This document shows, piece by piece, positions 4,768 through 41,606 of a stretch of 64,000 nucleotides of DNA. The notes below the pieces were generated by a model, which saw only the letters and a program-made list of their open reading frames with translations, searched no databases and was not told the DNA's origin. How positions within the stretch are numbered: the first letter of the stretch is position 1; each line of letters begins with the position of its first letter. Both the position numbers and the translations under genes were made by a program. Location: the sequence record MK268344.1. One strand, given 5' to 3'.

Positions 4768-4843
4768 AGTCCTATAGTTTCAGCGGTAAAAATACTCCCC
4801 TGTCACGGGAGAGTCACGGGTTCGAATCCCGTTAGGACTGCCA
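4768..4843 (+). tRNA. tRNA-Asp(GTC)
   Basis: AGTCCTA/TAGGACT acceptor, CTCCC-CTGTCAC-GGGAG, CCA. Confidence 0.95.
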
Positions 4844-4845
4844 AT

Positions 4846-4923
4846 GCGTCGTTAGCTCAGTTGGTAGAGCACCGGACTTTTAATCCGGGTGTCGCTTAGG
4901 TTCGAATCCTGCACGGCGTACCA
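4846..4923 (+). tRNA. tRNA-Lys(TTT)
   Basis: GCGTCGT/ACGGCGT acceptor, CCGGA-CTTTTAA-TCCGG, CCA. Confidence 0.93.
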
Positions 4924-4924
4924 T

Positions 4925-4999
4925 ACTCCATTCGTCTATCGGTTAGGACGTTGGGTTTTCAACCCAAAAAGATCAGTTCAATTCTGTTATGGAGTACCA
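4925..4999 (+). tRNA. tRNA-Glu(TTC)
   Basis: ACTCCAT/ATGGAGT acceptor, TTGGG-TTTTCAA-CCCAA, CCA. Confidence 0.92.
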
Positions 5000-5003
5000 C
5001 AAT

Positions 5004-5134
5004 GTATAGAATCAGCAATCTATATATAACGATATTAGAGCGTCTAGGAGCATAATATCTGCATATATAGTGAGTGGGATTGATAAGAGGTTGATCGCTC
5101 TTTGATGTGGGTTCGATTCCTACTCTATATACCA
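5004..5134 (+). ncRNA. 131-nt tRNA-like RNA with long inserted hairpin
   Basis: GTATAGA/TCTATAT acceptor + ACCA, T-arm GTGGG-TTCGATT-CCTAC, CTATATAT...ATATATAG insert in D region, TCAGCAA after 5' arm. Confidence 0.6.
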
Positions 5135-5153
5135 CACCTTATACGAGGTACTT

Positions 5154-5651
5154 ATGAAAGAACTAATTAAACAAAAATGTATGTTCGAGTTATTAAGTAC
5201 TGAAATCAATTCGGGTATAGTACTTGATGAACCAGAATGTTGGCTTCGAGATTACTATGACGAACCATTTACCGTTCCCATCGATTCATATATGGATGAT
5301 TATTGTACTACAATATTTCCAGATGAAGTCCATTTATTCACAAATAATTTTCATTTTATACATTACCCAAGTACTAAAGAAATCCGCATATATCTTATGT
5401 TCCATTTCAATACTAGTGAATATGGTGTTCCACCTGAATATTATAGAGACGAATTACATGACAACATGGAATCATGTATTGCAATTAACTCGAACGGGTT
5501 TTGGTTCAGCGATGAGAATTACACATACAGTACTGAAGAAGAGATATTCCAGTTGTCCTGTACTGAATTGGGGTTTTACATTGATATAGTAGAACGTGCT
5601 AAAGAATTCATTTATGCGGAGATACAAAACCGTGAATGTAGAGAAGTATAG
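5154..5651 (+). CDS. EEEYFQ-family hypothetical protein
   Basis: GAGG RBS; TEEEIFQLSCTELGF. Confidence 0.75.
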   Translation: MKELIKQKCMFELLSTEINSGIVLDEPECWLRDYYDEPFTVPIDSYMDDYCTTIFPDEVHLFTNNFHFIHYPSTKEIRIYLMFHFNTSEYGVPPEYYRDELHDNMESCIAINSNGFWFSDENYTYSTEEEIFQLSCTELGFYIDIVERAKEFIYAEIQNRECREV

Positions 5652-8356: not shown

Positions 8357-8432
8357 GCGTCTATCGTATAGTGGCCTAATATCACTGGTTTCCACCCAGT
8401 AGACCGGGATTCGAATTCCCGTAGACGCTCCA
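8357..8432 (+). tRNA. tRNA-Gly(TCC)
   Basis: GCGTCTA/TAGACGC acceptor, U73, ACTGG-TTTCCAC-CCAGT, CCA. Confidence 0.93.
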
Positions 8433-21493: not shown

Positions 21494-22066
21494 ATGAGTC
21501 GTTTAATTATTAAGAATAACAAGATGACAGTTCGCTTGCACAATGATGAGGCTGATTCGTTCATGGCTAAAGCTATTGCGAAATCAGAAAAATTCGAACG
21601 CATTGCATCAGCAGCGAAATCACCTTATGGTTTCAATCATCCACACGCTCATTTCGTTGGGATGGTTGCAGAACACGCTTCATGGATTCTGTTTAATAGT
21701 ATTGAAGAACTAACCGGGAATGACCTGAAAATTGATCCTGCATATCGCGATGAGAACCGTGAGGCTGAATGTGACCTGTACGTTAACGGATTACGTATTG
21801 AAGTTAAAGGTATTAAGTATGGGTCGTGGCTAAACTTCGGGCCGTGTATTAGCTCTCGTCAATTGAAAAAAATTGAGAAAAAAGCTGACATTGTTTTGTG
21901 GGCGTTGTATAATGAACGTCGTCAGGAATTTTCATTCGAAGGATTTAACTACGTTAAAGATATTCGTTCGATTCCTACTGTAGTTACTGGTGCTGTGGGA
22001 CGCCCACAAATCGAAAACCATCCAGTACTGGATATTCTTAAACCACTTCAGGAGCTTGCACTATGA
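21494..22066 (+). CDS. PD-(D/E)xK restriction-like nuclease
   Basis: GMVAE...ECDLYVNGLRIEVKG; AGGAG RBS before ATG 21494. Confidence 0.6.
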   Translation: MSRLIIKNNKMTVRLHNDEADSFMAKAIAKSEKFERIASAAKSPYGFNHPHAHFVGMVAEHASWILFNSIEELTGNDLKIDPAYRDENREAECDLYVNGLRIEVKGIKYGSWLNFGPCISSRQLKKIEKKADIVLWALYNERRQEFSFEGFNYVKDIRSIPTVVTGAVGRPQIENHPVLDILKPLQELAL

Positions 22067-22272
22067 AAGCATGGGTATATGTTGATGGATATGCAAAAGT
22101 AGAAGCTGATTTCCCAGAACTCCCACGTATGGGAGATGAAATCTCTATTAAAAGCATGCCCGACTCATTTGGAACTAAGTACATTGTTGATTATGTACAG
22201 CATGAAATTCGCCACGGCGATCTAACAACTAAAGTAACTATTAATATCTACACAAAGGAGGTTCCACTATGA
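22063..22272 (+). CDS. hypothetical protein
   Basis: AGGAG RBS, ATGA coupling. Confidence 0.7.
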   Translation: MKAWVYVDGYAKVEADFPELPRMGDEISIKSMPDSFGTKYIVDYVQHEIRHGDLTTKVTINIYTKEVPL

Positions 22273-22742
22273 TTCTCTCGTGTATTGCAATTTTAATTCT
22301 ATTCTGTGTGATTCTTTCTTGGACTGATTTACACTCACATGTAGGGTATGCTTTCTATGTAGCAAAGAATGAAGGATGGCATCTATTTCCAATTGTTTGG
22401 TTTCAATCATTCTTTCTACCTACAGCATTTTTACGTAGTGGTAAGTCTGCTTTTGATTATACTGAATTGTCCAAATTGGAACGTACACTAAGGGCGTACT
22501 TTAGTAACGAGGAAGGAATCGAAGCAGAATGGGAATCACGGCGTGGACGGTATTTTGAAATCAGTCGTAAGGGATTTAAAGGAATTCGTTTCCATATACC
22601 AAAAGATGATAGTGTTTCAATCAATGGTTATGATCGCTTAGTTCCACCACGCCTAGCATTTTTGATGCTAGCATGTGCTAAACAGATTGTAAACGAACAT
22701 AAAAAGAAAAAAAATACGAGTGAAAAACCACTTTTCTGTTGA
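22269..22742 (+). CDS. hypothetical membrane protein
   Basis: AGGAGG RBS, N-terminal TM. Confidence 0.7.
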   Translation: MILSCIAILILFCVILSWTDLHSHVGYAFYVAKNEGWHLFPIVWFQSFFLPTAFLRSGKSAFDYTELSKLERTLRAYFSNEEGIEAEWESRRGRYFEISRKGFKGIRFHIPKDDSVSINGYDRLVPPRLAFLMLACAKQIVNEHKKKKNTSEKPLFC

Positions 22743-29312: not shown

Positions 29313-29606
29313 ATGAAATATGATGTTATCATTCGTACTGAACAGACTATCCCATCTTTGAAGTACATCCATAAAGATGACAAATTTGATGAAGAACGTA
29401 GTCAAGAATTAGAACGCAATATTCTACGTATTTTCAATAAGGCATATCGCCCACATGGTATCGAATTAGTACCACATGAGGTTGAGTACTTACACTTTAC
29501 TATTCGTACTCTAAACTATGATGGTGAATGTAAGACGGATGAACTACGTATAGCGTATCATTTCTTCACTGGTATCTGTGAAGCCTTAGAACTTAAAGTT
29601 GCATAA
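29313..29606 (+). CDS. hypothetical protein
   Basis: AAGGAG RBS. Confidence 0.75.
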   Translation: MKYDVIIRTEQTIPSLKYIHKDDKFDEERSQELERNILRIFNKAYRPHGIELVPHEVEYLHFTIRTLNYDGECKTDELRIAYHFFTGICEALELKVA

Positions 29607-29628
29607 ACAAGATAAATGAGGATTTAAT

Positions 29629-30243
29629 ATGCCTATTCCATTATTCCATGAAACAAATACATTCACCGTATATAAAAAGAATGAAGAACTAAAGAGAATC
29701 AACTTCACTGGTCACAAAGTTAGTTTGTATTATAAATTATATTCAGTACTAAAAAAGAAGCATGACTACCACTTACAAACGTCAACAGTGCGTGATATTA
29801 CCGGACGTGTATTAATGAATGGTAGTTTCATAGATATCTTAATGCGGTTGATTGAAGAACTTAAGAAAAAATATAAGTACTCAATCATTAGTTACAACAG
29901 GGAAGGTATTGAAGTCTATCATTGGTATGATGACGAAGAAGGTGTTGCCTCACAACTGATGAATTTAAAAGAGAAGTATACTAAAAGTGGAGATCCACGT
30001 TTATTCCGCAAAGTACAAGTACTTGACAACGAATCTCAACGTAGTATGTATGAAAGTCTTGATGATCTAATTGATATGTTCAGAACTACTAAAGATGCTA
30101 AAGAACCAGAATTTGGTGTATACCTTAGCTTTGAAGAAGTACTAGAAGATATGCGTCCATTTATTGTTAATGGTTCAGACAAAGAAAAGATTGAAGCTAA
30201 AGCAATCTTGGCTTATGTTGCTGCTAAACTAGCGGAGAAATAG
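29629..30243 (+). CDS. hypothetical protein
   Basis: GAGGA RBS. Confidence 0.75.
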   Translation: MPIPLFHETNTFTVYKKNEELKRINFTGHKVSLYYKLYSVLKKKHDYHLQTSTVRDITGRVLMNGSFIDILMRLIEELKKKYKYSIISYNREGIEVYHWYDDEEGVASQLMNLKEKYTKSGDPRLFRKVQVLDNESQRSMYESLDDLIDMFRTTKDAKEPEFGVYLSFEEVLEDMRPFIVNGSDKEKIEAKAILAYVAAKLAEK

Positions 30244-30274
30244 TTGGGACAAACCTGAATTAATGTCCTATAAT
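30244..30274 (+). promoter_or_regulatory. phage promoter class TGGGAC-N18-TATAAT
   Basis: TTGGGACAAA...TGTCCTATAAT. Confidence 0.7.
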
Positions 30275-30280
30275 AAGATA

Positions 30281-30800
30281 TAAACCGATTACGGGGAGTC
30301 CAATTGACTCCCTGATGTTGTTATTCCTGATCCACTTGAAAATGTAAAGGGCAGATGAGTTGATAATCGCAACGAAGTGCAGATGAAACCCGCTCGGCGG
30401 CAATGCGGCACTATAAACGAGAACGTAAGGCACGTAACCTCGCTAGATAGACATATGAGAGTACTCACCAGATTGCTAAGGGAGTTTATTAAAGGGTTAG
30501 TCACGCCCGTAATAAACACATTCTAACGTGGACTGTATCGCGTTAGGATGAGTGTAGTAGGACTACGACCGTTGCATAGAACAGAGATAGGGAGAAACAG
30601 GGCAACCCGCTTCCGTGTCATTGACAATTCTCTATACAGTAAAGCCGATGCCACCAGCGTCAAGTTTTAATTCTTCCTCCCCAGCGGGGGGATGAAATTG
30701 CCTCAACAAACCTCGTCAATATAAAAGGTTGACATAATCGAATGAATGAATTACACTGAACGTAGTGAAGAGTAATTCCGTTGCTATCGAAGATAGTAAC
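30281..30800 (+). ncRNA. candidate large structured ncRNA (~500 nt)
   Basis: No + strand ORF, visibly GC-richer than flanks, own promoter, multiple hairpins (GGGGAGTC/GACTCCCT, TCTAACG/CGTTAGG, TCCTCCCC/GGGGGGA, GAATTAC/GTAATTC, GTTGCTATC/GATAGTAAC). Confidence 0.55.
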
Positions 30801-30818
30801 GTTTGATAGGAGTTCAAA

Positions 30819-31685
30819 ATGATCCACCTAAAATTATCAATTCCAGATATGGATTATGCCAATCTCAATCCTGATTTCTATCCATACATTGACTGGAATA
30901 AATTGCGAGATACAGAAATCTCATTAATGCCAAAAGATGTAATTCTGTATGCACCAATTCGTAAAATCATTTCCCATTTAAGTACACAAGAAAAATCCGG
31001 TGTAAGTGATACACAAGTACTGGAAGTAATCGCACGTTGCTTTAATGAATTGAATGAAAAAAAACATTTATTTTCACGCGATGTAGATTTGTTCAACTTC
31101 ATTAATGAATTTTGTAGTTTTGAATTTCGTAAGAAATATCATAGACAATTACTTGCTAAACGCCATCCAGAACATACATATCAGTTTGTCTGTACATTGG
31201 TTGCAGATTATATTGTTGGTTTGGAATTTTTAGATAAACTACCTTACCACAAAATGACAATTGATGTATTCAACAAACTAAAACTGGAGGATATGAGAAA
31301 ATTAATCTTCAATACTAATTACATTCAAAATACATTAACATATCAAGTACAGATGGATGAAGCTGCATTTGCATTACCATCGTCTGATTTAGAAAAATTA
31401 AAAATGCCAGTTCCCAAAAATGTTATGTTTACAAAAACACTACAGAAATTATGTACAAGTGAACAGTTTTCTGTAGTTGTAAAACAACAAGAAGAAATTA
31501 ATTGGGATGAAATGGTTGACTTATACCATAAAGGTGAAATAGTATACAGTGACTTATTTCTAGTTTGGAAAAATTTTATTGAAGAAAGTAATGAGGATTA
31601 TATTCGCGATTCTGAAGAATTTGTAAGCGAATCTATCAACAACAACTTCGATAGAAGTTACTTTAATATTAAGGATTACTTATGA
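30819..31685 (+). CDS. hypothetical protein
   Basis: AGGAG RBS. Confidence 0.75.
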   Translation: MIHLKLSIPDMDYANLNPDFYPYIDWNKLRDTEISLMPKDVILYAPIRKIISHLSTQEKSGVSDTQVLEVIARCFNELNEKKHLFSRDVDLFNFINEFCSFEFRKKYHRQLLAKRHPEHTYQFVCTLVADYIVGLEFLDKLPYHKMTIDVFNKLKLEDMRKLIFNTNYIQNTLTYQVQMDEAAFALPSSDLEKLKMPVPKNVMFTKTLQKLCTSEQFSVVVKQQEEINWDEMVDLYHKGEIVYSDLFLVWKNFIEESNEDYIRDSEEFVSESINNNFDRSYFNIKDYL

Positions 31686-32454: not shown

Positions 32455-33414
32455 ATGCCACATTTCACTTTTGCAGAACCAAAACAAACCAGTACTAAAA
32501 AGACAAAGGTTAAAACCGATAATGCTGCTGGTTTAATCTACACTGCAATGAAGAAATCAAAGGTTCGTAATCCTAAATTTAAACCAGCATTTGTTGCTAG
32601 TTTACCACGTCAGCACAACTACTCTAAAACAGTACAAGTACTGTTGAATATGTATAAATCATCGGGTTCATTGAAATGCTCCTGCTGTAATTCATCTGAA
32701 GCATACTTTGTAATACATGTCGAATGTGGTCGTGCAACATTTCGTGCTATGGTAGATACTAATAGTGGTCGTCAAGTCCTGACCGTTGACCATGATGTAC
32801 TGAAATCGTTAGGCGGTAAAGATGAAGAACAAAACTACAATCCGTTGTGCTATAAATGTAATCAGATTCGTGGTTCTCGTTTCGCTGGATTTAAAGAATT
32901 CAAAGAATGGTATGATTCACAAGAAGTAATTGATACCATCAGTGGTTTACCATCAGCAAACTTCTGCCATATAGATTTTAAAAGTAATCTTAACAATAAT
33001 ATCCATTGTGAAACCATTAATGGTGCAACTGCGTTGCCACCAAATATAATGAATGAACTTAAGAAAGAAATGCGTCGTGACCAATATGACATTTTCTCTA
33101 AACTATCTATAAAGATTTGGTTGAAGATGGATCGTGATAGTGCTAATGCTATCTTAAATGAATTAGTACTCGAACGTATACAAAAACGTCATAACAAGAA
33201 ACATATTAAATTACAAAATCATAACTTTTTTAACTACCAGAAGAATATTACAGATCATCGTAAAATAAAGATGCATATCGAAGAACAATTACGTGCACAG
33301 GTTCGCAAGTTACGTAATACACCAGTACATGTCAGTACTGAAGAAGTTAAGAAAGTCAATACTGCATTTAGTTTTAAAAATATTTGGTCAGCCTTGAAAA
33401 ATATCTTTGCCTAA
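32455..33414 (+). CDS. HNH-domain protein
   Basis: CSCC...LTVDHDVLKSLGGKD...NYNPLCYKCNQIRG. Confidence 0.75.
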   Translation: MPHFTFAEPKQTSTKKTKVKTDNAAGLIYTAMKKSKVRNPKFKPAFVASLPRQHNYSKTVQVLLNMYKSSGSLKCSCCNSSEAYFVIHVECGRATFRAMVDTNSGRQVLTVDHDVLKSLGGKDEEQNYNPLCYKCNQIRGSRFAGFKEFKEWYDSQEVIDTISGLPSANFCHIDFKSNLNNNIHCETINGATALPPNIMNELKKEMRRDQYDIFSKLSIKIWLKMDRDSANAILNELVLERIQKRHNKKHIKLQNHNFFNYQKNITDHRKIKMHIEEQLRAQVRKLRNTPVHVSTEEVKKVNTAFSFKNIWSALKNIFA

Positions 33415-40194: not shown

Positions 40195-40832
40195 CTAAAC
40201 AAGAAATCTTTAAGCACATTATTACGATCCTACGTCCCGAAACCCTCCGTCGCCAAATGGAGTTTGATATTGTTCAAGCAGAACGTATCATCAAAGAGAA
40301 AGTACAAGAAGTTGGCCTGACCTTTGTTGGTATTGGGATGTATGCTGTAGTAGTCGAACATCCTAACTATCCTGAACGTGTATTCAAAGTAACTACTTCT
40401 CGCTGGGATGGTTATCGTGAGTATGCAAAGTACTGTATAGCTAACAAGGGTAAAAAGTTTCTACCTGTTATTCATAGTGCCAATGAGAAAGGAAACTTCG
40501 GATGGTATGAACTTGACAAGTACTACCCCATCATAAACCCTAACGGTGGCTATGAGGCGTTCGTTAGCATCTATGTAGAGGATATGTATGCTTATGCTCA
40601 TGCGGGTCAGTACAGCGATTCTGTTAAGGATTTAGAGGGTAGACCAGAAGCTATTGAGATTTATAAACGTGCAAAAGAGATTGCTGATTTATACAAAAAT
40701 AGCTTTACATTAGATATCCACACTGGTAATATAATGCTTAGTAAAGATGGTGAAGTAATTATTACTGATCCGCTAGCGGCTGATGTACGCAGGGAAATCC
40801 CTGTATCAGAAGCTGATCCCGAATTCGATTAG
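40191..40832 (+). CDS. Ser/Thr protein kinase, T7 gp0.7-like
   Basis: GIGMYAVV (Gly loop), VFKV, LDIHTGNIML catalytic loop, ITDPL metal-binding motif. Confidence 0.8.
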   Translation: MTKQEIFKHIITILRPETLRRQMEFDIVQAERIIKEKVQEVGLTFVGIGMYAVVVEHPNYPERVFKVTTSRWDGYREYAKYCIANKGKKFLPVIHSANEKGNFGWYELDKYYPIINPNGGYEAFVSIYVEDMYAYAHAGQYSDSVKDLEGRPEAIEIYKRAKEIADLYKNSFTLDIHTGNIMLSKDGEVIITDPLAADVRREIPVSEADPEFD

Positions 40833-40840
40833 GAGCTATT

Positions 40841-41011
40841 ATGAACTCAAATAACCTCATTCTGAAAGAAGCAATTCATACTCTGTGTGTTCTTCGTTGT
40901 CAAAATCTTCAGATGATTTATGAAGGAAACGATAACACTTCAAAAGAAAAAGAAATCGAAGCACAGGAGAAATTCATCAAAGAGTTTATTGATGAACATG
41001 TGCCTAACTAA
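40841..41011 (+). CDS. hypothetical 56-aa protein (not in ORF track)
   Basis: AGGAG RBS; MNSNNLILKEA...DEHVPN. Confidence 0.6.
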   Translation: MNSNNLILKEAIHTLCVLRCQNLQMIYEGNDNTSKEKEIEAQEKFIKEFIDEHVPN

Positions 41012-41021
41012 TGGTGAATGT

Positions 41022-41606
41022 ATGAGAAAAATAGTTCTTGCACTTGCATTAACACTATTCAGTACTACAGCTTTTAGTACTCAATACCAATGCAGTGTAT
41101 CAAGAAGTACAGGACAATTCACAAAAGGTATCATCACTGAACGTGGTGATACCGTATCCTTTACGACCTTTGACAATAAAGAAACTTATACGTCTGGTTC
41201 CTTATTCGAACTACAGACGAATAATATCATGCTAAAGCATAAAGCAAAGGATAACGTAGCTTTCTGTACTAACGTCATGACTACTGCTACTGAAGATAAC
41301 TTTGGTAATAAGTCTTTCATGTTCAAAAATACTGGTAGTGGTGAAAGTTTAACCTTCTATGATTGTGAAGAGTTTCAGCAACCAGAAGGAGAAGAGGAAG
41401 AAGCATGTGATTTACCCCTCCCAGAACCATCTGTATGCCCCGCTACTGAGCCTAAAAAACTAGCTGATAAGCTAGATGGTAATGGTGACAAACCCCCTGA
41501 GAAGAAGTCTGGTAAGCCACATAAGCCTAAGAATCCATTCAACAAAGCTAACAAACCGAAGCCAAAATCAAAAATGCCAACACCAGATAATATGTGTCCT
41601 ACTTAA
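41022..41606 (+). CDS. secreted protein with Pro/Lys-rich C-terminal tail
   Basis: Signal peptide MRKIVLALALTLFSTTAFS; several Cys. Confidence 0.7.
   Translation: MRKIVLALALTLFSTTAFSTQYQCSVSRSTGQFTKGIITERGDTVSFTTFDNKETYTSGSLFELQTNNIMLKHKAKDNVAFCTNVMTTATEDNFGNKSFMFKNTGSGESLTFYDCEEFQQPEGEEEEACDLPLPEPSVCPATEPKKLADKLDGNGDKPPEKKSGKPHKPKNPFNKANKPKPKSKMPTPDNMCPT

Follow-up and report, generated by a model that had tools for sequence, protein, structure and literature searches.

A new family of large structured RNAs in Rak2-like jumbo phages and enterobacterial chromosomal islands

The Munch locus and its promoter

The window analyzed here, 64,000 nucleotides in all, is the final 64 kb of the genome of Salmonella phage Munch (MK268344.1, 350,103 bp); a window position is the record position minus 286,103. 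One ORF stops at 30243 and the next starts at 30819, leaving a gap of 575 nt (30244-30818) in which the sole GenBank annotation is the ribosome-binding site of the downstream gene. The original prediction, made from the letters of this DNA, was that the gap has no credible ORF and is richer in G+C than its flanks. Both statements are borne out: there is no conserved ORF (even among the nearest orthologues, frameshifts or stops interrupt the small ORFs), and G+C is 0.42-0.48 inside the gap and 0.30-0.36 in the flanks. No tandem or direct repeats were found within the element. The locus contains the following features.

30245-30274, + strand: promoter, with a -35-like TGGGAC (30245-50), an 18-nt spacer and a -10 TATAAT (30269-74)
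30281-30801, + strand: RNA gene of about 520 nt, supported by nhmmer and covariance-model matches and by conservation across 79 copies
30808-12 and 30819-21, + strand: ribosome-binding site AGGAG and start codon of CPT_Munch_496

The promoter, TGGGAC-N18-TATAAT, had been predicted to precede the element and does so. Against the sigma-70 consensus, 10 of its 12 positions match. Sites of the form TGRRAC-N16-19-TATAAT occur six times on the + strand of the window (at 687, 2345, 2704, 6999, 19272 and 30245) and not at all on the - strand, the expected number being 0.24 per strand. In the genome paper of phage CBB the same class, there with TGAAACG at -35, is called a 'divergent RpoD-like promoter' (PMC5259590). 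Among the homologues described below, the -10 box lies at the same alignment place in every full-length copy, those in bacterial islands included, and most full-length copies keep the -35 element TGRRAC. Because copies in bacterial chromosomes keep the -10 box too, the promoter is probably recognized by the host polymerase. The element therefore does have a promoter of its own, as predicted, but not a strictly phage-type one, given its sigma-70 consensus and its retention in chromosomal island copies.

From the position of the promoter, transcription would start at about 30281, the 5' end of the RNA. The 3' limit of 30801 is the end of the last conserved helix, P18, so that the RNA extends to at least this point; no intrinsic terminator was found after the element in the window copy. 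As 7 nt separate P18 from the ribosome-binding site of CPT_Munch_496, the CPT_Munch_496 mRNA probably begins with this RNA, unless the RNA is processed off.

Conservation and fold of the RNA

In blastn searches the core of the element was found in 62-72 GenBank phage records, all of them from Rak2-like jumbo phages with genomes of 310-385 kb, each of which has 2-5 matching places; the family spans all Rak2-like jumbo phages, and there were no temperate-phage homologues among the GenBank records. The phages with the RNA include 121Q, PBECO4, EJP2, GAP32, fHe-Yen9-04, the Erwinia SNUABM phages, Serratia BF, CBB and XaC1; RaK2 has a weaker match than these. Several of the GenBank records carry spurious 'hypothetical protein' genes overlying the RNA, an annotation that is corrected here. 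Pattern scans of IMG/VR and of JGI and ENA metagenomes, filtered with nhmmer, gave 79 distinct copies. Both GACCGTTGC and GCAACCCGC were part of the retrieval patterns, which accounts in part for their invariance in this set. A loose DNA pattern scan returned chance matches only. The core motifs of the family include GACCGUUGC and GCAACCCGCUU. For the window copy the family HMM gives a score of 403 bits, and R1, a covariance model of the central domain, gives 144 bits; this copy fits the family definition of a sigma-70-like promoter followed by P1-P18 with PK1-PK3, all helices being present.

Comparison of these copies supports the prediction of a large structured noncoding RNA. In a MAFFT alignment of the 79 copies, in which no structure was used in fitting, 18 helices with 92 pairs were found; 92.7% of their cells are canonical, and 68 of the 92 pairs show compensatory changes in at least two sequences. 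The check that had been proposed, a covariation test on homologues from related jumbo phages, thus revealed good conservation together with covariation. RNAalifold, applied to 31 copies, gave 61 pairs, 37 of them with compensatory changes, and a scan for stacked covarying column pairs (in 31, then in 79 copies) recovered the RNAalifold helices along with long-range ones. Within the helix cells of the 79 copies, G-U (9.5%) outnumbers A-C (1.3%) by seven to one, implying that the + strand is the folding strand; the folding energy of the element has z = -3.79 on the + strand and z = -3.40 on the - strand. Length varies only at helix tips (P4, P7, P13 and a site after P14), which is the pattern expected of an RNA, and many bases in junctions and loops are near-invariant. 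The fold has three domains and about 18 helices, with two pseudoknots that covary and a third for which there is one compensatory case. Its 5' part is made up as follows.

30292-30314, + strand: P0, 9-bp hairpin at the 5' end, GGGGAGTC/GACTCCCT
30326-30517, + strand: 5' domain, P1a-P7 with PK1
30327-29 / 30352-54, + strand: P1a
30332-37 / 30347-51, + strand: P1, loop GAAAAUGUA
30359-62 / 30370-73, + strand: P2
30376-80 / 30408-12, + strand: P3
30390-93 / 30397-400, + strand: P4, with 30-45-nt inserts here in other copies
30403-05 / 30452-54, + strand: PK1
30418-21 / 30439-42, + strand: P5
30456-59 / 30464-67, + strand: P6
30484-91 / 30510-17, + strand: P7

P0 had been predicted as a helix. Its sequence varies, but a hairpin of at least 5 bp is kept at the same place in 44 of 48 copies, and the region is more stable than shuffled sequence in 46 of 48. 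In the 5' domain, pairing ranges from 76 to 95% per helix and compensatory changes occur in every helix. Sliding the partners by 1-2 columns as a control left far less pairing, with the single exception of PK1; PK1 itself covaries, from G-C to A-U and from U-A to C-G.

The central domain is the most conserved part of the RNA.

30519-30661, + strand: central domain, P8-P14, PK2 and PK3
30519-31 / 30538-50, + strand: P8
30532-38 with 30634-40, + strand: PK2, formed by the P8 loop
30553-57 / 30563-67, + strand: P9
30571-75 with 30602-06, + strand: PK3, GUUGC with GCAAC
30571-73 / 30580-82, + strand: local alternative to PK3
30583-87 / 30629-33, + strand: P11
30590-94 / 30610-14, + strand: P12
30617-19 / 30623-25, + strand: P13
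30647-51 / 30657-61, + strand: P14

Model R1 was built from 47 sequences less than 93% identical, and 77 matches were realigned to it (alignment A4). In the R1 alignment 98.2% of cells are paired and 27 of 32 pairs have changed on both sides. The covariation score is 0.743, as against 0.215 for shuffles (0 of 500 reached 0.743) and at most 0.142 when the partners were slid by 1-3 columns. The predicted helix TCTAACG/CGTTAGG turned out to be part of the 13-bp P8, in which 12 of 13 pairs covary, and all seven pairs made by the 7-nt P8 loop in PK2 covary as well, with 97.7% of cells paired. We considered and rejected a hetero-oligomer in which the PK2 loop would pair with another paralogue, since each loop matches its own strand only. 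PK3 is invariant in the pattern-selected set; the divergent fifth copy in Munch, found by blastn and not by pattern, has GUUGU/ACAAC, a compensatory change. A long-range pairing of GCAACG with CGTTGC, thought possible in the original prediction, is not supported: the 5' partner varies without compensation, and the bases pair in P2 and PK3.

The remaining helices belong to the 3' domain.

30677-30801, + strand: 3' domain, P15-P18
30677-82 / 30686-91, + strand: P15, C-run with G-run
about 30692-30719, + strand: conserved unpaired stretch
30715-19 / 30729-33, + strand: P16, in the closest relatives only
30748-54 / 30772-78, + strand: P17, with a conserved base and a conserved 11-nt loop, GAACGUAGUGA, at 30758-68
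30779-88 / 30792-801, + strand: P18

All four had been proposed. P15 (TCCTCCCC/GGGGGGA) is conserved, with one-sided changes only, as is its G6 run at 30686-91. P16 (GTCAA/TTGAC) forms in the closest relatives but does not hold family-wide, where 42% pair. P17 (GAATTAC/GTAATTC) and P18 (GTTGCTATC/GATAGTAAC) are conserved elements, and P18 covaries, with at least five mutually complementary versions of the stem at the same place. These two helices were judged by per-sequence folding; RNAalifold on the gappy 3'-domain alignment returned no structure. In about two thirds of the 31-copy alignment a terminator-like hairpin with a U-run follows P14. The window copy is without it, and conserved structure extends about 150 nt past it.

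Judged by this comparative evidence, the data show that 30281-30801 on the + strand is the gene of a large RNA evolving under selection for its fold.

We also asked whether the RNA belongs to a known family. With Rfam 15, cmscan at gathering thresholds found only 7 tRNAs in the window; in the region itself, at E up to 10, it gave only two chance-level matches (a CRISPR repeat and a microRNA), and at thirteen phage and nine bacterial loci no family fell on the element. This search, which had been suggested as a check, hence produced no match, at gathering or permissive thresholds, to ROOL, GOLLD, OLE, raiA or any other Rfam 15 family. ARAGORN found nothing in 29500-31500, and the statement that tmRNA ends and the RNase P P4 signature are lacking agrees with the absence from the element of any tRNA, tmRNA or RNase P signal in the Rfam and ARAGORN searches. 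No description of this RNA was found in the literature by full-text searches. We are nearly certain that the family is new and consists of genuine structured-RNA genes. Of the classes first offered, ROOL/OLE/GOLLD or an undescribed one, it is the undescribed class, in the ROOL/GOLLD size range, that stands; a match to the Rfam families does not. Group I and II introns and self-cleaving ribozymes were discarded, there being no Rfam match and the element not lying inside a gene. A hammerhead-like CAGAUGAG-stem-CGAAG at 30352-30376 was likewise rejected: A replaces U4, A14 is absent and the next base is part of a covarying pair.

Paralogues in Munch and copies in chromosomal islands

Munch has five diverged copies, all on the + strand (positions of the MK268344.1 record).

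about 40,481-41,116, + strand: copy 1
about 100.1 kb, end near 100,780, + strand: copy 2
182,043-182,599, + strand: copy 3
262,956-263,524, + strand: copy 4
316,347-316,921, + strand: copy 5, the window copy

The gaps between them are 59.6, 81.9, 80.9, 53.4 and 74.2 kb. Five points placed at random on 350 kb would leave no gap smaller than 53 kb with a probability of (1 - 5 x 53.4/350.1)^4, or about 0.003, a value computed post hoc and for one lineage. There is no GC-skew inflection at 30.2 kb; the skew tracks gene strand. In a tree, the copies fall into deep paralogue clades, each with members from several genomes, implying that the duplications are old and that each copy has been retained. 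The 40-kb Munch copy is syntenic in Yersinia phage fHe-Yen9-04: downstream of it, both phages have a gene of about 175 aa together with genes for a Dam methylase and a cytidylyltransferase. In most phage copies a gene begins 7-25 nt past the last helix. The genes downstream of different paralogue types belong to unrelated protein clusters, and the 121Q copy lies between opposite-strand genes, with no same-strand gene downstream.

A scan of one genome per prokaryotic species revealed nine full-length homologues (297-375 bits), in Citrobacter, Serratia (two), Silvania, Enterobacter, Buttiauxella, two other Enterobacteriaceae and one 'Clostridium' contig, which is probably mis-binned. Among complete E. 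coli genomes, 2 of 5,426 have the RNA; none of 72,556 plasmids has a homologue. The bacterial copies lie in islands, one per island, beside an integrase and with the same promoter. Most islands have an integrase of the tyrosine or large serine type, the RNA on the same strand, and a convergent cI-like HTH/S24 repressor; next, in most, come a cro-like gene, a hypothetical protein of 257-286 aa, a small protein and then defense cargo (nSTAND3, AbiGi and DUF4238, or mSLOG-DUF4326, DUF488 and DuOB). One Serratia island is an exception to the strand rule, having a serine integrase and two ParB/RepB-like genes, with the RNA on the opposite strand. In some records the 257-286-aa protein is labelled a membrane subunit.

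No structural or recognizable replication genes were seen within the 8-28 kb of island examined. The islands have core proteins in common with each other and none in common with the Rak2-like phages, leaving the RNA as the only element common to both; the genera that host the islands are those infected by Rak2-like phages. We found no protein gene that travels with the RNA: the phage neighbors are uninformative, the downstream genes unrelated, and the island proteins absent from Rak2-like phages.

Possible functions and comparison with known RNAs

What might such an RNA do? Large bacterial and phage RNAs with tertiary structure conserved to this degree are rare, and those known are ribozymes, cores of ribonucleoproteins or enigmatic assemblies, namely ROOL, GOLLD and OLE. 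By analogy with ROOL or GOLLD, we tentatively favor a stable RNA particle acting in trans, a reading to which we give somewhat less than an even chance. According to this model, the host sigma-70 RNA polymerase would transcribe the RNA from infection onwards, and the P0 hairpin and compact pseudoknotted fold would make it a stable particle. It would act in trans through its fold, on a partner supplied by host or phage and not by a dedicated neighboring gene; its core for binding or catalysis would consist of the near-invariant junction nucleotides, and the paralogues would be told apart by their variable peripheral helices. Such behavior has been proposed for ROOL and GOLLD, ornate RNAs that phages carry.

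The density of near-invariant junction and loop bases does resemble the core of a ribozyme or aptamer more than a leader, although the invariance of two core motifs is partly an artefact of pattern retrieval. Independence from the neighbors (unrelated downstream genes, the setting of the 121Q copy, the convergent cI-like gene of the islands) and the absence of a co-inherited protein are also consistent with action in trans, as are the niche in phages and prophages, the size and the multiple pseudoknots shared with ROOL and GOLLD (bioRxiv 10.1101/2024.12.08.627333). On the other side, no terminator defines a 3' end, and the gene that starts so close behind the last helix in most phage copies suggests that the RNA may be a leader. 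The sole relative with a transcriptome, PA5oct, does have RNA-seq-transcribed unannotated gaps of 0.24-0.62 kb, ncRNA001-004 ('putative lncRNA'), two of which (236 and 451 nt) are abundant, at up to 5% of phage reads (PMC7318152); PA5oct is a distant Rak2-like relative, and its ncRNA002 is not homologous to this RNA by nhmmer or R1. Finally, syntenic, evenly spaced, diverged paralogues fit a role tied to the locus more naturally than a diffusible RNA.

That last point leads to the main rival, to which we accord a real but minor likelihood: each copy would be a replication origin of the jumbo phage, the 3' part of the RNA serving as hybrid or primer for a T4-like replisome, and the islands would be satellite-like elements with one copy, replicated by a helper phage. 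Precedents exist. T4-type phages have several origins, and oriF and oriG of T4 fire from transcripts that begin at a promoter and form R-loops; RNA II, the primer of ColE1, is structured, about 550 nt long and endowed with a G-run, and its fold matters. The conserved G6 run at 30686-91 recalls that of RNA II, and the five same-strand paralogues are spaced at 53-82 kb around 350 kb, though the statistic of about 0.003 is post hoc and concerns one lineage. Positions are syntenic across genera, and promoter and RNA are conserved as a unit, islands included. The islands, for their part, show no recognizable replication genes (one is made up of the RNA, an integrase and two ParB/RepB-like genes), share only the promoter and RNA with the phages, and occur in the very genera that Rak2-like phages infect. 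Yet pseudoknots and near-invariant junctions go beyond what a primer needs, the GC skew has no inflection at 30.2 kb, and the RNA is absent from the 72,556 plasmids. Nor was a conserved AT-rich unwinding element or a set of iterons seen downstream, where coding sequence follows directly. In its full form, with the five copies as Rak2-like phage origins that use a pseudoknotted primer or R-loop RNA and the islands as a new kind of satellite without a replication protein, this proposal is possible but doubtful. If it were true, the islands would be copied by the infecting jumbo phage through one RNA origin. Instead of an origin transcript, the RNA may be a new ribozyme or a self-assembling RNA particle.

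Quite improbable, in our estimate, is a cis-acting leader that controls the downstream genes, whether an antiterminator like HK022 put, a very large riboswitch or a 5' stabilizer. Such a role would suit an RNA that a promoter immediately precedes and that, in most of the phage copies, ends 7-25 nt ahead of a ribosome-binding site; the internal terminator-like hairpin and U-run, in about two thirds of 31 copies, would suit control of read-through, and the copies are spaced along a genome transcribed almost wholly in one direction. However, the genes downstream of different paralogue types are unrelated, and the 121Q and island copies have no same-strand gene downstream, which speaks against membership of a riboswitch or leader class. 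Conserved structure continues for about 150 nt beyond the hairpin, no conserved sequestering of the ribosome-binding site was seen, and known antiterminator RNAs are 70-120 nt long.

That the element is no RNA gene at all, and is instead the remnant of a protein gene, or a repeat that acts as DNA (a protein-binding array or recombination site, for example), is extremely improbable: the - strand too folds below shuffled sequence (z = -3.40) and the GTTGC...GCAAC inverted repeat could in principle be a DNA site, but 68 of 92 pairs are compensatory in an unfitted MAFFT alignment, which argues against covariation as an alignment artefact, G-U is tolerated on one strand only, length varies only at helix tips, and there is neither a conserved ORF nor any tandem or direct repeat within the element.

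A trans-acting particle, then, is the reading we prefer. The position-conserved copies and the sharing with islands point to a so far unstudied level of biology between phage and host or phage and satellite. The family is tractable: coliphages and Salmonella phages that can be cultured (Munch, 121Q, PBECO4, GAP32) carry it, as do chromosomes of E. coli, Enterobacter and Klebsiella, which should make genetics and biochemistry straightforward.

Among known systems, the HK022 put and EAR antitermination RNAs are likewise promoter-proximal and structured, stand at the head of phage transcription units and have terminator-like hairpins downstream. To our knowledge, they are 70-120 nt long and always precede an operon, whereas the present RNA is 5-8 times larger and some of its copies precede nothing on their strand. 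ColE1 RNA II and the T4 origin transcripts are the comparison for a promoter-defined noncoding transcript of about 0.5 kb, and a G-run is conserved here. The present RNA has no homology to them, with no match to RNAI or any other Rfam model and none on plasmids; its tertiary structure is far more elaborate, and no unwinding element was identified.

GOLLD RNAs have optional inserted modules. They are very large, ornate phage and prophage RNAs with a conserved core and variable regions (bioRxiv 10.1101/2024.12.08.627333), and they differ from this RNA in fold, hosts, copy number and context. Neither GOLLD nor ROOL is matched through its Rfam model, and the tRNA context typical of both is missing, the nearest tRNA in the window ending at 8429, 22 kb away. 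ROOL, at 500-700 nt, has multiple pseudoknots, is borne by phages and prophage-like elements, has been proposed to form an RNA-only particle, and has no known protein partner or function (bioRxiv 10.1101/2024.12.08.627333). Its range is Firmicutes and rumen phages, where it usually lies close to tRNA genes, whereas the RNA described here belongs to Rak2-like phages (mostly of Enterobacterales) and to islands of Enterobacteriaceae, with five spaced copies per phage genome.

Optional parts of the RNA

In alignment A2, which holds 31 copies of the RNA, an optional module of ~35 nt, with a consensus close to GUACAAUAUAGAUCCGUCCAAAAUU, is inserted repeatedly at the tips of two helices, P7 and P13. 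The same module is found in copies of the RNA carried by islands, the small integrase-bearing chromosomal elements of Enterobacteriaceae; the window copy does not have it. The insert looks like a portable structural module.

Examples of the ~35-nt insert at P7 and P13 in alignment A2
Locus L023, ~3100-3150
Loci L008, L016 and L021

A second optional part lies between P14 and P15, where about two thirds of the copies (19 of 31) have a covarying hairpin with at least six consecutive U after it. This element falls inside the conserved RNA, at a site corresponding to window ~30663, and is present in many paralogues and absent from the window copy. It is either an arm of the structure or a terminator that acts conditionally within the RNA.

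Divergent copies and integrase islands

The RNA has a deep-branching subclass in six metagenome contigs (L198, L209, L229, L232, L239 and L248), which differs in its 5' domain but retains the central domain and some of the 3' domain. The existence of this subclass implies that the family is wider than the isolates of the Rak2-like group, the jumbo phages to which Munch belongs.

Among the integrase islands with the RNA, some bear defence-type cargo as well, and in the one from E. coli LR-29-1 the integrase is split by an IS3 element.

Cargo of RNA-bearing islands
Buttiauxella (L266/L267): nSTAND3, AbiGi, DUF4238
E. coli LR-29-1 (L265), adjoining ffs: mSLOG-DUF4326, DUF488-N3, DuOB

In Serratia fonticola (L262, NZ_CP183218.1), two adjacent full-length rof genes occupy 4775-5490 at the island edge, beside tilS; this arrangement suggests that rof was the integration target and was duplicated in the process. 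An island copy near-identical to those of Enterobacter and Buttiauxella is also present in L263 (DPOH01000171.1), a 2.8-kb contig of the MAG 'Clostridium sp. UBA10317', and this contig is probably mis-binned enterobacterial DNA.

Annotation, window context and a second jumbo-phage RNA

In several GenBank records, strings of tiny 'hypothetical protein' genes, part of them on the wrong strand, are annotated over copies of the RNA. These are very likely spurious calls.

Records with tiny genes over the RNA
PHA46 (L269, 881-1414)
7t3
Hallingskeid (L003, 1412-2023)
fHe-Yen9-04, g047/g048 and g347/g348

Within the window, five further promoters of the RNA's class (TGGGACAAA...TGTGATATAAT) were found, all on the + strand, at 687, 2345, 2704, 6999 and 19272; one such promoter lies shortly 5' of the tRNA at window 2919. 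A neighbouring gene labelled 'hypothetical protein' in GenBank is, by its profile matches, an HNH endonuclease.

Window 32455-33414, + strand: CPT_Munch_499, HNH endonuclease, 319 aa (Pfam HNH, E = 3e-5; phrog_25420, E = 3e-39)

At window ~45000 the GC skew changes abruptly, from ~+0.1 to ~-0.2/-0.3, and stays negative through the window end, presumably reflecting a change of coding strand.

Finally, phage PA5oct encodes a G+C-rich, abundant 'putative lncRNA', ncRNA002 (L176, PA5oct 21951-22401). It is unrelated to the Munch RNA family, and is a separate jumbo-phage RNA.
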